Both the position numbers and the translations under genes were made by a program. From Zygophlyctis sp. KS116 (Eukaryota; Fungi; Chytridiomycota), in assembly GCA_054661495.1 (NCBI GenBank), contig BAAFSQ010000003.1:30001-62000 (forward strand): a stretch of 32,000 nucleotides of DNA. The letters run 5' to 3'. Of this stretch, positions 26,354-32,000 are shown piece by piece. The notes beneath the pieces were generated by a model, which saw only the letters and a program-made list of their open reading frames with translations, did not search any database and was not told the DNA's origin. Position 1 is the stretch's first letter. Every line of letters starts with the position of its first letter.

Positions 26354-28375
26354 TCATTCTTTATTAATAAAACTTGATCTAGATTTAATCTGGCTAGAGC
26401 CCTGAGAACTCTGGGCTTCAGAGTTTTGGGAATCTTCACTTTTATGAAATATGCCACCAGACTTTTGCAATTGTTGAATTTGATATTGTGTTTGATGTGC
26501 TTGTTTTTGTGCTTGTTGCATCATGGCCTTGACTGTTGCTGAGCGTTCAGATGATTCATTCTTCTTTTTTAAGAATTTATCTCCAAGATTCACACTAGGT
26601 CCCTTGGGGAGTCTCTTCTTGATTGAGGCTGGTATGACTGCACGAACTACAGAGCTTGGTGGTGGTCCGCCATAAGGAAGTGTGCCAAGAGGACTCGGAT
26701 GAAAAGAGATTTGTTCAAAATGTGCAGGTTTGTTGATGTAAAATTTATATTCGTCTTCTTTGGGTGCATGTGTTATTGTTCGGAATTTGAGATTACTAAA
26801 ATTATTTTCAAATTTACTTACTTTAATAAGTCTTCTTCTAAAGGAATAAAGTCTGGATCTGAATTAAATTCATCAGAGCTGTTATCATAACGGTTCTTTT
26901 CAAGATTTTTTTGGAAATTTTCATACAATTCTCTAGAATCAAAAACTAGAGGAGAATCTAGATTTCGTACTTTATACTCGGGCTTTCGAGATAAATGACG
27001 ATCTATAATTTGTCGTCCTCCACGTCCAAAACGCTTGCGGATATATAAATTTGACTTTTTGTCCATGGGAATAGATATTAAATCATTATGTTTACACCAG
27101 TATGAAGCTATCGGTGGTTTGGGTATTGAAGTACTCTAAAACGTTTAAAAAAATAAGCTTACATCAGTCAAATCTACCCATCCATCCTTCTCTTCTGTCA
27201 ATTTATGTTTTTGAACTTGTTCTTGTAAAGAAAGAAGAAAAAGACCATGTGAAGAGGTATCCATATCATGTACAAATGAAGATGCATCTTTAAACTTTGA
27301 TGCAGGTATACGAATTTTAGTTGAATCTCTAAGTTTTAAAAAATCCAATTAAATAATACCTGGAATCTTCTATTCTTTTCAGTTTCTTCCTTGGCCGAAC
27401 CAGCGGAGCTATATCCCAATCCCTATCAGTAATCTGAATCCCCAATTTCTTTTTTAATTTTCTAATCTTTACACGCTCTTCAAAAATCTGAATATCATAT
27501 TCTAGAGCCTCCTTTTTGCAATTCTCTCTAGCCACTACTAAATTTAAGATTTCTCTTGCTTGTAAAAGCTCATTTCTTAATCTTGTCAATTTCTCCAATG
27601 ATTGTCCATCTGATCTTCTCATCTTTCTCAATGGTTTTAATTCTCTTCTTCTAAAACATACATAAGGATCTGAATCTGGTTTATCCGACAATTCTTCAAA
27701 CTTTTCTGATTAATTTATACTAGATACCTTTAATTTTGGAATAATTGACTTTCCTCCCCGTGTACCATACCTCCTATCTTTCCAATATTGTATTATTTGA
27801 GTGAAAACATTATTATTTAGAGAGTCTTTATCTAATGCTTCTAAAACACTACAACAATCTTGTAAATTTGGTTCTTCTGTCCCCCTTTCATCCCCCAATT
27901 TTTCCAAAGTCCAGAGTAATTCTTCAAATAATTCTTCAGAAATTGCAGTATCCGCATTTTCCTGCCATTTCCCTAAAAATTCCAAATCTTTTTCATCTAA
28001 ATCATACGGAATCCCTCTAGAGTCTTCAATAAAAGCAGAAAATCTGATTAAACTCTTTGGCAGAGAATAATCTCCACTATAAAAACTTGAATAATTTGGC
28101 CAAACTTTTGAGGCATCGGGCGTTGGAATGACTACAGTCCCTAGCGTATTATTTTGTGAAGCTATGAGAGCGGCTTGTAGATGATGTTCCTCTTCTTCTT
28201 CCTTTTCTACACCGGTTGCAAAAGTTGGAATATTACGATTCAGAACAGCATTTTGGTCAATCAGCGGTAAATCGCAAAGTTTAAAAACTAGAAGGGGTTT
28301 CTTAAAATCGAATTTCCGGGACCTTAGTGAAGATGATGATGGAGTGCCATTGGTAGAATGGCCTGTTGTTGGCAT
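26354..28375 (-). CDS. EPL1: Enhancer of polycomb-like (NuA4 subunit)
   Basis: 'TGVEKEEEEEHHLQAAL', 'IPTPDA', 'YDLDEKD', 'YWKDRR', 'DPYVCFRRRE', 'RKRFGRGGR.IIDR'. Four micro-introns; first in-frame ATG at 28375. Confidence 0.92.
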
Positions 28376-28506
28376 TGTAGAGTTGCTCTTTTCTGCTCTG
28401 ACGCCAAAGGGTTCGCGCTTAAAGGTTTCTGATTGCTTTAATACGCGATAATTATAACACAATAAGTCTTTTTCTAGTGCCAAGATCTACTAGTTAGTCT
28501 ACAATC

Positions 28507-28898: not shown

Positions 28899-29657
28899 AT
28901 GAATTATATTCCAAAATCAAGAGTAGGAAGAGGATTATTGTTGACTCTAGTGTCTTCAACTGCTTATTTTTCCTATGATAGATATCAGTATATGATTATA
29001 AACCAAGATTTAGAGAAGAAATTCAAGGTTTTTGGATCTCTACCTATTAAACCTGGTGATCCATCAGATAAATTAAAGATTTATATTGCTCCTAGTTTTT
29101 ATGCCATGAATTGGTTTAATTCTTATATTAGACCTTTTTTATATATTGGAGGGATGGATTATGAATTGGTTCAAAAGGAATTAGATCAAATACAAGAGGA
29201 TGTAGTCAATACAATTAAAAATAGTAGAGACCGTTGGATTACTCAAACAATTAAAATTAGAGATAGGACTTGGATTGAATATTTTAGAGGGATTGATGCT
29301 CCTACTAAAGATATTCTAAAAGTCCAAAATGAATTTAAAGGGATTGTAGGAGTTGGACCCGAAGTTTATGATTTAGTTTTGGCTGGATATGATCATGGAG
29401 TGCATTGTACCAAGGAGAGTCATGTTGAAGACTGTACTAATTCAGAAAAATCAGAAAATTTAGAAAATCTAGAGCCGTCAAGGATTACAGCAACAGTGGA
29501 GGATTACAAAAATTATCCAACTTTATTTAATCTTCCAGGAAAGGAACAAACAGGATGGAGAGGATTTCCGAAAAGAATATTTTGGGCTTTTAATCAAAGA
29601 TGGATTTTACAGCAAGTTGGAGATGAATTGGTAGAAATATTCAAAAAAGTTGAATAG
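28899..29657 (+). CDS. TIM54: Mitochondrial TIM22 complex subunit Tim54
   Basis: N-terminal TM followed by 'YDRYQ', 'KLKIYIAP', 'F.SYIRPFL...GMDYELV' and C-terminal 'GWRGFPKRI.WAFNQR...VG'. Confidence 0.75.
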   Translation: MNYIPKSRVGRGLLLTLVSSTAYFSYDRYQYMIINQDLEKKFKVFGSLPIKPGDPSDKLKIYIAPSFYAMNWFNSYIRPFLYIGGMDYELVQKELDQIQEDVVNTIKNSRDRWITQTIKIRDRTWIEYFRGIDAPTKDILKVQNEFKGIVGVGPEVYDLVLAGYDHGVHCTKESHVEDCTNSEKSENLENLEPSRITATVEDYKNYPTLFNLPGKEQTGWRGFPKRIFWAFNQRWILQQVGDELVEIFKKVE

Positions 29658-29660
29658 ATT

Positions 29661-30636
29661 TTAGAAAATAAATGCTTCTTGATCATACTCTTTTCCTAAA
29701 TTCATGTATGAGAATTTATCTGATCTGTTCATGAATGCTTTTGCAAAGAATATTAGAGCACGGAGCAACATAAATAGTAAAAATGATAATCCTCCAACCT
29801 CTCCAAGCCAGTTATCCATATCTAAAGTTAGGAATGATTTTTCATAAGTAACTTCAAGTTTGGGATATCTAAATTGAAGAATTAAATAATTTCCCAAGAC
29901 TGAAGTTGCATTTCCATTAGAAACAATTTCAATTGAAGAAGGTTTAACTTCATAGACTAGATTAGATTTTCCGTATTGATCGATTTCATAAACTTTTCTA
30001 ACTATTAAAAATTTAAAATTACTTTGAAATGATTTGAGTTGCAGTTCCTGTTCCTGCTCCGAAAAAGTTGTCAAAACTCATATTTGGCTTTACATCTCTG
30101 CCATTATGAGCATGAGCAATAACAAAAAGCCCTGAAGGAGATCCTCTTATTTGACCTGATACACTTGCAGTAATTGTAAGTATATCTCCTTCCTGAGATG
30201 CTGCAAGTGTATCACCTGGTAAATCATTTAAAGTTAAACATTCACGATCAAAACCGCTAAAGTTGACTACTCTTGAATATATTCCAGAGTCATCACAAGG
30301 AATTTTATTTCCAGTGGATGATTTAAGACCATAACAAGAGATTATCCCGGCCGTTTCTCCAACTTCCGGACAGATTGTCACTGCAGGAAATTCATAAGAC
30401 GGCGAAGGGATCTGAGATGGAAACATGTTATTTAGGAAATCAACTGAAAGATGCTGAGGTGATGCAGTAGTTCTATAAGTTGCAGGCAGTTGAGAAGCAA
30501 ACTTATGGCCTCGTACGATAGCATAAATGAATACACTGAAACCAAAGATTAACCCAAATACAAATTCCAGTCTAGCGATGATCGTCTGGCCTCTTGTATT
30601 CAATGATCGTTTAAAGAAGAGACTGTTATTGTTCAT
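29661..30636 (-). CDS. Two-TM DEG/ENaC(ASIC)-like channel subunit with a reduced ectodomain (about 316 aa)
   Basis: TM1, 'FPAVTICP', 'ECLTLN', 'GLFVIAH', 'NYLILQFRY.KL', 'WLGEVGG'+TM2 occur in the DEG/ENaC order. One 25-nt intron 29998..30022. Confidence 0.65.
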
Positions 30637-30674
30637 TTTTAGAGTTACGTCATTTGATTGTTCAAGGTTATCAG
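30637..30674. promoter_or_regulatory. 38-bp divergent intergenic region with a CRE-like TTACGTCA
   Basis: ATGs at 30636 (-) and 30675 (+); ACGTCA at 30647-30652. Confidence 0.5.
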
Positions 30675-32000
30675 ATGGAACAAGACTTTACTGACCAAGA
30701 TCTGAATGATCCCACTCTTTTGGCAGAGCTCGCAAAGCTTGGATTGTCTGATACAGTAGATGTTGTTGTAGGCCAGGTGGATCATGTTGAGATTAATACT
30801 GAATTTGATGATGTGGAAGTTGAATTTGATGATAAAGACATGGAAGATCCTGATTTACTGGTAATATGCAATCATTAATCAATAGAAAGATCTTCAGAGA
30901 CTACATGATACGGCCATTGATCGGGAAGAGACCAAAGATGATCATAATCAAGAGCATAAGACTCTTCGCAATGCAGAGGTGAATACGATCGCCAAGAATC
31001 AAGGGGAGTTGGATCAAGGAGAAGATCAGGAAGACTTGCTCAAAGAATTAATACAAGGACAAGTTTCCAAACCCATCGTTTCTCCGTCGATAGATCAATT
31101 AGAGACTTTACAAGCTAAAGCACTGGAATTAAAAAAAACGGCACTGAAATTTAAAAAGGAAAATAATTTAGTAAAGGCTAGAGAAGCTCTGATTGCTTCT
31201 AAAAAGGTTCAAGAGCAGATAGATAGAATTACTTCTGGATTTGCAGTATCTCCAGGGTTTGTGATTCCTGACTTGACTGTGCAGTCTCCAAACATTAACA
31301 GTAATAGTGGTACTACTAATTCTGTTGATGCTGCTAATGTAACCAATACGAGTAATTCGAATGAATCACGTAGATCTATAAGGAAAGAAGTTGTCTCTCC
31401 TAAAATATTACAAAAAGACATCATTCCAATCATACACGATGATCAATTTGATCCATTAAAAGAATTAGAGACAAAAATGGAATCAACAGATATTTTCAAG
31501 CATTTAAGTGATGTATTGAATGAACAGATTAAGACTTGTACGAATTTATCAGCTTACTACTTTAAATCTGGAAAGAAAGATAAAGCTTTGGAGTTTCACA
31601 AGTACAAAAAAGGATTTTTAAGTGATTTAGAAGCTTTATTAGCTTTATCAAAGACCAGTGGTGCTGCACCCCCTACTTTCTCTTATTTTAATATTGCTTA
31701 TAATATTGAAATACGGGTTTCAGAGTTGAGCATGGATGAATTACTCTTAAATATTGTAAAAGGATATGATATGAATTCTTTTCAAGGAAATGAACTCTCA
31801 ATTTCTTTTAAAATAGAAGGATTAGAAGACAATGGAGGAACAGGAGAAGTTTTATTTCAAAAAGAGAATAATCCAGGTATATGAATTTTTTAAAAATCTA
31901 GAGATTAAGTTTTCTAAAAAGATAAGTATTCAAAGAAACAAGAATTTTCAAAGGATTTTAGAACGTAAAAAGGTCCAATTAGAACTTTATTCTACCTCTA
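30675..32000 (+). CDS. CC2D1/Lgd-like protein (DM14-type helical repeats + C2 domain), runs off the window end
   Basis: 'DPTLLAEL' acidic N-terminus; DM14-like 'LQAKALELKKTALKFKKENNLVKAREAL..SK'; 'L.EQIKTC...AYY..G.K..A.EF'; C2 start 'ELSMDELLLNIVKG'. Introns 30861..30885 and 31877..31901. Confidence 0.7.

Follow-up and report, generated by a model that had tools for sequence, protein, structure and literature searches.

The locus described here raises the question of whether a chytrid fungus possesses an ion channel related to the DEG/ENaC family, which has been treated as essentially animal. The gene lies on the minus strand, at 30636..29661, of a 32,000-nucleotide stretch of DNA from Zygophlyctis sp. 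KS116 (contig BAAFSQ010000003.1, positions 30,001 to 62,000), which we refer to as the window. An initial reading of the letters alone had proposed that it encodes a minimal, thumb-less DEG/ENaC-like channel. We found that the gene is remotely homologous to DEG/ENaC and has a compact build like that of PAC (TMEM206, ASOR). It is not a canonical member of either group, because several of the defining features of those channels were tested for and found to be absent. A BLAST survey from 2023 that included Fungi recovered DEG/ENaC candidates only from holozoans, one alveolate and one stramenopile, with none from fungi (PMC10507113), and our literature searches returned nothing linking TMEM206 or DEG/ENaC to chytrids, fungi or Euglena. 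The Zygophlyctis gene and its relatives represent a DEG/ENaC-related family in chytrid fungi, where this channel family had no previous report.

Gene structure and DEG/ENaC signatures of the protein

The gene has two exons and a product of 316 residues. The features of the gene and of the protein (TM1 and TM2 being its two transmembrane segments) are as follows, in window positions:

30023..30636, minus strand: exon 1, with the ATG at 30636, codons 1-204 and two bases of codon 205; it runs from the N-terminus through TM1 into the ectodomain, most of which it encodes
29998..30022, minus strand: intron of 25 nucleotides, GT..AG
29661..29997, minus strand: exon 2, with the last base of codon 205, codons 206-316 and the stop TAA at 29663..29661
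30589..30594, minus strand: R15-G16 ahead of TM1, where DEG/ENaC channels have H-G, as judged by position only
30514..30570, minus strand: TM1, residues 23-41, with the family-wide Y-A-x-x-R-G after it, from hydropathy, helix 11-45 of an orthologue model and conservation
30367..30390, minus strand: F-P-A-V-T-I-C-P, residues 83-90 (including C89), the post-TM1 DEG/ENaC signature, aligned to FPAVTxC of ASIC5 and ENaC
30226..30240, minus strand: C133-L-T-L-N137, counterpart of DEG/ENaC C-x-T-F-N by alignment and conservation
30112..30132, minus strand: G169-L-F-V-I-A-H175, counterpart of ASIC/ENaC G-x-x-V-x-x-H by alignment and conservation
29790..29813, minus strand: N-W-L-G-E-V-G-G, residues 267-274, the most conserved motif of the family, corresponding to ASIC L-G-D-I-G-G, where TM2 has its outer end
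29730..29801, minus strand: TM2, residues 271-294, with M-L-L in place of a G/S-x-S filter and R284 ten residues past G-G

The splicing is indicated by the reading frame and by homology. The unspliced frame runs into an in-frame TAA at 30021..30019, and removal of the 25 nucleotides restores the frame and completes codon 205 (AA from exon 1 and A from exon 2, Lys), the 614 and 337 nucleotides that remain making 317 codons, that is, 316 residues and the stop. Across the junction, the window reads T-Q-I-I-S-[K]-K-V-Y-E-I-D, compared with T-E-I-V-G-K-K-L-Y-T-I-D in full-length chytrid proteins, and P0008, an environmental relative that is intronless there, has S-R-K-V-Y. The spliced model is collinear with chytrid proteins of 300-325 residues. 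Hydropathy, with peaks at residues 23-41 and 272-290, gives two transmembrane segments, residues 23-41 and about 271-294, separated by an ectodomain of ~225 residues, with a stretch of only ~20 residues ahead of TM1. All four of the protein's Cys residues (89, 101, 114 and 133) are within the ectodomain. These results agree with the gene length, topology, Cys count and intron that had been proposed at the outset.

In its overall plan the protein resembles the DEG/ENaC channels (ASIC1-5, ENaC, FaNaC, pickpocket and the degenerins), in which a large ectodomain is likewise flanked by two transmembrane helices whose cytosolic ends are short. The signatures also occur in the same order: FPAVTxC, CxT(F/V)N, GxxVxxH and a strand ahead of TM2 that ends in G-G. 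The Cys residues of FPAVTxC and of CxTxN are invariant in the family and, in ASIC1, together form the first conserved disulfide. There are also clear differences from DEG/ENaC. The chytrid protein is ~200 residues shorter and has no Cys-rich thumb or helical finger; the ectodomain of ASIC1 has 14 Cys, unlike the four found here.

A chytrid-wide family and its sequence link to DEG/ENaC

In searches with the window, the exons were queried separately (30025-30636 and 29664-29996, both on the minus strand). Exon 1 matched one protein at 98% identity, several environmental proteins at 53-75% and proteins of the named chytrids Powellomyces, Geranomyces and Fimicolochytrium at 41-46%. A profile of chytrid proteins (A1), when searched against 1.84 billion representatives, matched 75 proteins, and for 58 of these the match was at E <= 1e-10. 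All named members are from Chytridiomycota and all are annotated as hypothetical. Orthologues were found in Spizellomyces punctatus (SPPG_04067), Thoreauomyces, Polyrhizophydium, Boothiomyces, Globomyces, Irineochytrium, Podochytrium, Polychytrium, Cladochytrium, Zopfochytrium, Lobulomyces (which has two copies) and Clydaea; the 12.7-Mb genome from which the window comes has one copy.

A quick maximum-likelihood tree, whose root is arbitrary, separated the proteins into two clades, each with a support of 100 in the Shimodaira-Hasegawa-like approximate likelihood ratio test: a chytrid clade of 23 rows and a second clade of 33 proteins of ~285-300 residues. In this tree, the window protein groups with P0008 and then with members of the Rhizophydiales (support 95). 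The gene therefore belongs to a Chytridiomycota-wide family in which the window is placed with the Rhizophydiales, in agreement with the suggestion that the DNA is from a probable zoosporic fungus and is not contamination. The window protein keeps nearly every column that is at least 80% conserved across the family.

The second clade is important because it connects the chytrid proteins to the known channels. Profile A1 matches its environmental and Euglena proteins at E 1e-29 to 1e-10, and hhalign comparison of the chytrid type with this type gave a probability of 100 (E 6.9e-50, 272 columns), showing that the two are homologous from end to end. When proteins of the second clade were scanned singly on the Pfam ASC profile (PF00858), which has a gathering threshold of 23.6 bits, 10 of 10 were above it, with scores of 29.7-52.3 bits, and we refer to the clade as ASC-type. 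A scan of the 50-sequence family listed ASC at E <= 1 in 32 members (best E 6e-14). Searches of an ASC-type profile (A4) against the sequences of solved structures in the PDB matched ENaC alpha (4e-7), ENaC gamma, ASIC2, FaNaC, ASIC1, ASIC5, PPK26 and BRTNaC1, with the matches to solved ENaC and ASIC chains spanning E 4e-7 to 1e-3. For a profile of both clades together (A2), all nine of the best matches were DEG/ENaC. HMMER alignments to solved ASIC5 and ENaC show three collinear stretches, namely FPAVTxC, CxT(F/V)N through GxxVxxH, and the strand ahead of TM2 (R-Y-P-K-L / N-Y-S-D-L) through GG, and thereby confirm that the ASIC motifs occur in order, as first read. In the window exons, F-P-A-V-T-I-C-P is the sole stretch matched by the ASC profile, and its P and C are invariant among 50 relatives. 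Overall, these data establish that the chytrid proteins are remote homologues of DEG/ENaC. The tie is transitive, because it is the ASC-passing clade that links them to solved DEG/ENaC chains, but it is strong. The initial assignment thus holds, with the proviso that the relationship is distant.

Members of the ASC-type clade (P0037-P0100, e.g., L001:81-974 and L002:163-1044) have the appearance of compact DEG/ENaC members from microbial eukaryotes. Their sources are ~1-kb contigs of Joint Genome Institute (JGI) samples and two EukProt Euglena transcriptome entries (E. mutabilis and E. longa), the latter of which may represent contamination of those transcriptome assemblies. A word-based search with one member, P0041, found no animal channels; its seven matches were unnamed proteins from JGI/Logan. 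The homologues reported from Cafeteria, a heterokont, and from Tunicaraptor likewise come from outside animals, and they were recovered when animal sequences served as BLAST queries, and fall with the ASIC and ENaC groups (PMC10507113). The chytrid proteins, for their part, appear far more divergent and much shorter.

Two further observations concern individual database entries. The P0008 protein (275 residues, ENA) turns to unrelated sequence right past L-D-M, ahead of N-W-L-G-E-V-G-G, which suggests an uncalled intron elsewhere in the gene of that organism. In some entries (P0017, 858 residues; P0029, 424; P0103, 451; P0105, 492), the domain is one portion of a much longer protein, or the entry falls in a cluster annotated as RNase H-like or ERI1; given how compact chytrid genomes are, merging of gene models is a more probable explanation than true fusion.

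Predicted fold, assembly and pore

The fold and its assembly were computed for the Powellomyces hirtus orthologue P0009, using AlphaFold2 with a 50-sequence alignment. The model (pLDDT 91.8, pTM 0.80) has long helices for TM1 (11-45) and TM2 (267-298) and an ectodomain that is nearly all beta apart from two short helices, and contains the palm and beta-ball core of the ectodomain. Among the 50 Foldseek matches listed, 20 chains of PAC/TMEM206/ASOR come first, at E 2e-14 to 2e-11 and with template-modelling scores (TM-scores) of up to 0.62/0.71, followed by 30 ASIC chains (ASIC1/2/5) from E 2e-9. In VIA-align, all 50 of the entries listed are PAC or DEG/ENaC. The PAC fold is matched along the whole chain of the predicted model. 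In the structure-based alignments, PAC shares fewer identical residues with it (11-12%) than ASIC/ENaC do (16-17%). A previous report describes ASOR/PAC as resembling ASIC in structure despite having no sequence conservation with it (PMC8809534). The model of the ASC-type protein P0041 has its elements in the same order as P0009 and is also thumb-less.

Relative to ASIC5, the finger region has 35 residues versus 87 and the thumb region 18 versus 114, and the description "thumb-less, finger reduced" is therefore accurate; the early claim that both elements are absent stands for the thumb, with the finger being shortened. The likeness to PAC that had been noticed from size was also recovered in the fold, as PAC was the top Foldseek match.

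Prediction of three copies of P0009 as a complex gave a median ipSAE of 0.75, versus 0.00 for the best of three controls, with at least 70% of contacts agreeing between runs and a partner pLDDT of at least 67. The mark used for this comparison was calibrated on two copies; of 30 solved homo-pairs, 21 reached it, as did none of 23 single chains. The predicted interface is formed by palm strands 159-168, 190-200 and 222-231 and by TM2 residues 268-283, as expected for an ASIC/PAC-like trimer. A homotrimer, if correctly predicted, would be a further point of likeness to DEG/ENaC.

The residues that are conserved in both clades include Y-A-G-x-R-G at the end of TM1, FPAxTxCP, the four Cys, CxTxN, GxxVxxH and N-W-x-G-E-V-G-G-x-A-x-L-L-x-F-L. 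The Glu of G-E-V-G-G stands at the position of the Asp in G-D-I-G-G of ASIC1, in the outer pore. The register of TM2 beyond this motif was obtained by ungapped counting from the aligned G-G. At the position of the GAS belt (+7 to +9), the window has M-L-L and the family F-L-(H/Q/L), with His at +9 in 87% of the ASC-type clade. Position +10 has Arg or Lys in ~70% of the chytrid clade versus ~13% of the ASC-type clade, and is R284 in the window. Positions +15 and +18, which correspond to E451 and D454 of chicken ASIC1, are hydrophobic. Ahead of TM1, the window has R-G, as do 75% of the chytrid-type proteins in the form (R/K)-G, and H-G occurs in neither clade. The replacement of GAS, and an HG motif reduced to "TRG" at best, had been noted from the start, and both are supported here.

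HG and GAS are highly conserved in DEG/ENaC and reportedly play a part in gating and selectivity (PMC10148893); as both are absent here, we infer that neither selectivity nor the lower gate is the same. The loss of GAS, HG and the lower-TM2 acids, while the Glu ring and the mid-TM2 Arg/Lys are kept, suggests that these properties differ from those of the Na+-selective, amiloride-sensitive DEG/ENaC channels. Judging from the residues, the channel may select cations, given the Glu ring, or anions, given an Arg/Lys that would act as in PAC.

The cytosolic tail of the window protein (29664-29740, residues ~291-316) contains R-S-D-x-F-x-Y-x-x-L-G-K-E-Y, which is common to the window and Spizellomycetales proteins. 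Its Y-x-x-L is a possible endocytic or endosomal sorting signal, and the tail is unconserved in the ASC-type clade.

Searches of the ESM Atlas showed additional proteins with a shape similar to that of the model. These included Mucoromycota clusters of 466, 483, 708 and 1002 residues, the largest of which is fused to Kelch beta-propellers (shape TM-scores of 0.61-0.69), and a ciliate family with PF27811 (Y80K_N). Based on the predicted shapes, both may be further unrecognised relatives of the two-helix fold.

Probable function, alternative explanations and genomic setting

Our data make it probable that the gene encodes one subunit of a compact, gated channel with two transmembrane helices, related to DEG/ENaC and PAC-like in build, which is most likely a homotrimer. 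Of the DEG/ENaC architecture, the protein retains both pore helices, the palm and beta-ball of the core, and the two Cys pairs that form core disulfides; the Cys-rich thumb and the helical finger are missing, giving it an overall build like that of PAC/TMEM206. In the trimer, TM2 would line a central pore. The protein would function at the surface or in the endomembranes of the chytrid cell, as an ion channel that a ligand, protons or force would gate. A sensory or osmotic role in the zoospore, as first suggested, is pure speculation.

Several observations weigh against a channel of this kind. The Pfam ASC comparison was divided: exon 1 of the window scored only 10 bits (E 0.42), compared with the threshold of 23.6 that ten sister-clade proteins passed, and exon 2 gave nothing. 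Of 14 chytrid-type proteins scanned singly, none came near the threshold (best E 0.073), and the chytrid-only profiles A1 and A3 found no solved structure among PDB sequences, only noise. Motifs regarded as highly conserved and critical for function in DEG/ENaC (HG, GAS and the E451/D454 pair of chicken ASIC1; PMC10148893) are absent from the chytrid family. The structural comparisons that had been proposed gave a palm and beta-ball fold, PAC and ASIC matches and a predicted trimer; the structure modelled, however, is that of P0009, which is 46-50% identical to the window protein, and not of the window protein itself. The trimer result may reflect the model's memory of solved ASIC and PAC trimers, and was judged by a calibration on two copies, not three. 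Every member of the family is known from sequence and prediction alone. Lastly, in two metatranscriptome runs that contain a small share of the stretch, the channel gene had no RNA reads and no splice joint; the RNA coverage in those runs was a single contig on a neighbouring gene, at 29400-29599.

One alternative is that the protein is a PAC-type, acid-gated anion channel, in which the mid-TM2 Arg/Lys would act as the PAC pore lysine. In PAC, a lysine in the pore-lining part of TM2 sets anion selectivity, and in the chytrid-type proteins the Arg/Lys ten residues past G-G is on the face of the helix with the predicted trimer contacts. The two groups are alike in size and in having no thumb, and TMEM206 clusters were listed in the ESM Atlas both by features and by shape. 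Nonetheless, we consider this explanation improbable. The TMEM206 profile (PF15122) was unlisted for the window exons at E <= 10 and, in a scan of 50 relatives at E <= 1, was not one of the 25 families matched most often, and no sequence similarity to PAC was detectable. All sequence links lead instead to DEG/ENaC, as does the higher structure-based identity given above, and PAC is without the FPAVTxC- and G-E-V-G-G-type signatures that tie the chytrid family to DEG/ENaC. The chytrid Arg/Lys, moreover, is only a putative counterpart of the PAC lysine.

It is also unlikely, in our view, that the protein has the same fold without being a channel, for example as a two-helix protein that, like ERV41/ERV46/ERGIC, receives cargo or acts as a scaffold early in the secretory pathway, or as a membrane-anchored binding protein. 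The loss of the classical DEG/ENaC pore motifs would fit such a role, as would the possible sorting signal Y-x-x-L at the C-terminus of the window and Spizellomycetales proteins and the ERGIC/ERV clusters found in Atlas shape searches (TM-scores of 0.48-0.54). Against this, the top motif of the family, N-W-x-G-E-V-G-G, together with the TM2 face that follows it, is exactly the pore-forming element of ASIC, and the predicted trimer puts TM2 at the threefold interface. There was also no Pfam signal for ERV/ERGIC. An ERV41/46-like identity in particular was rejected, since such folds appeared only at TM-scores of ~0.5 in the Atlas and none was among the 50 best PDB matches of Foldseek or VIA-align.

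That the gene is an artefact (a chance open reading frame, a pseudogene or a contaminant) is effectively refuted by conservation, despite the lack of RNA reads on it in the two metatranscriptome runs: independent samples and named chytrid genomes contain one relative at 98% identity and many at 41-75%, nearly all family-conserved residues are kept, and the gene is packed within 3 and 38 nucleotides of its neighbours in a region with ordinary eukaryotic genes (Tim54 and EPL1).

Read as a DEG/ENaC-related channel, the gene reveals a conserved family across many chytrid genera that has a sequence tie to DEG/ENaC and the shape and size of PAC. It provides a new data point on the origin of both channel types, and a natural minimal version with which to ask what the palm and beta-ball core does without a thumb, finger, GAS belt or HG gate. 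It is also a candidate sensor or ion pathway in zoosporic fungi, with an orthologue (SPPG_04067) in Spizellomyces punctatus, a species that is transformable. More tentatively, it is possible that the chytrid proteins and the ~290-residue sister clade (from soil eukaryotes and Euglena transcriptomes) preserve a minimal core that is ancestral to a single ancient superfamily of channels, all trimeric, and from which DEG/ENaC arose by gain of the finger and thumb and PAC by divergence. If this were true, the family would be the first sequence-anchored bridge between DEG/ENaC and PAC, and the superfamily would have originated no later than in the ancestor of opisthokonts, and perhaps at a much earlier point in eukaryotic history.

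The region around the gene is densely packed. A Tim54-like open reading frame on the plus strand (Pfam Tim54, E 2e-11) ends at 29657, with 3 nucleotides between it and the stop of the channel gene at 29663..29661 on the minus strand. The two coding regions are convergent, and their 3' untranslated regions must therefore overlap. On the other side, a divergent open reading frame on the plus strand has its first ATG at 30675, 38 nucleotides (30637-30674) from the ATG of the channel gene at 30636, and any promoter region shared by the two would be extremely short. The ordinary eukaryotic neighbours and the size of the intron argue that the gene is native. Further away, an EPL1 (Enhancer of polycomb-like) open reading frame was found at 27710-28480 on the minus strand (E 7e-14), and its C-terminus has a weak, sub-threshold match to Pfam Flagellar_put.
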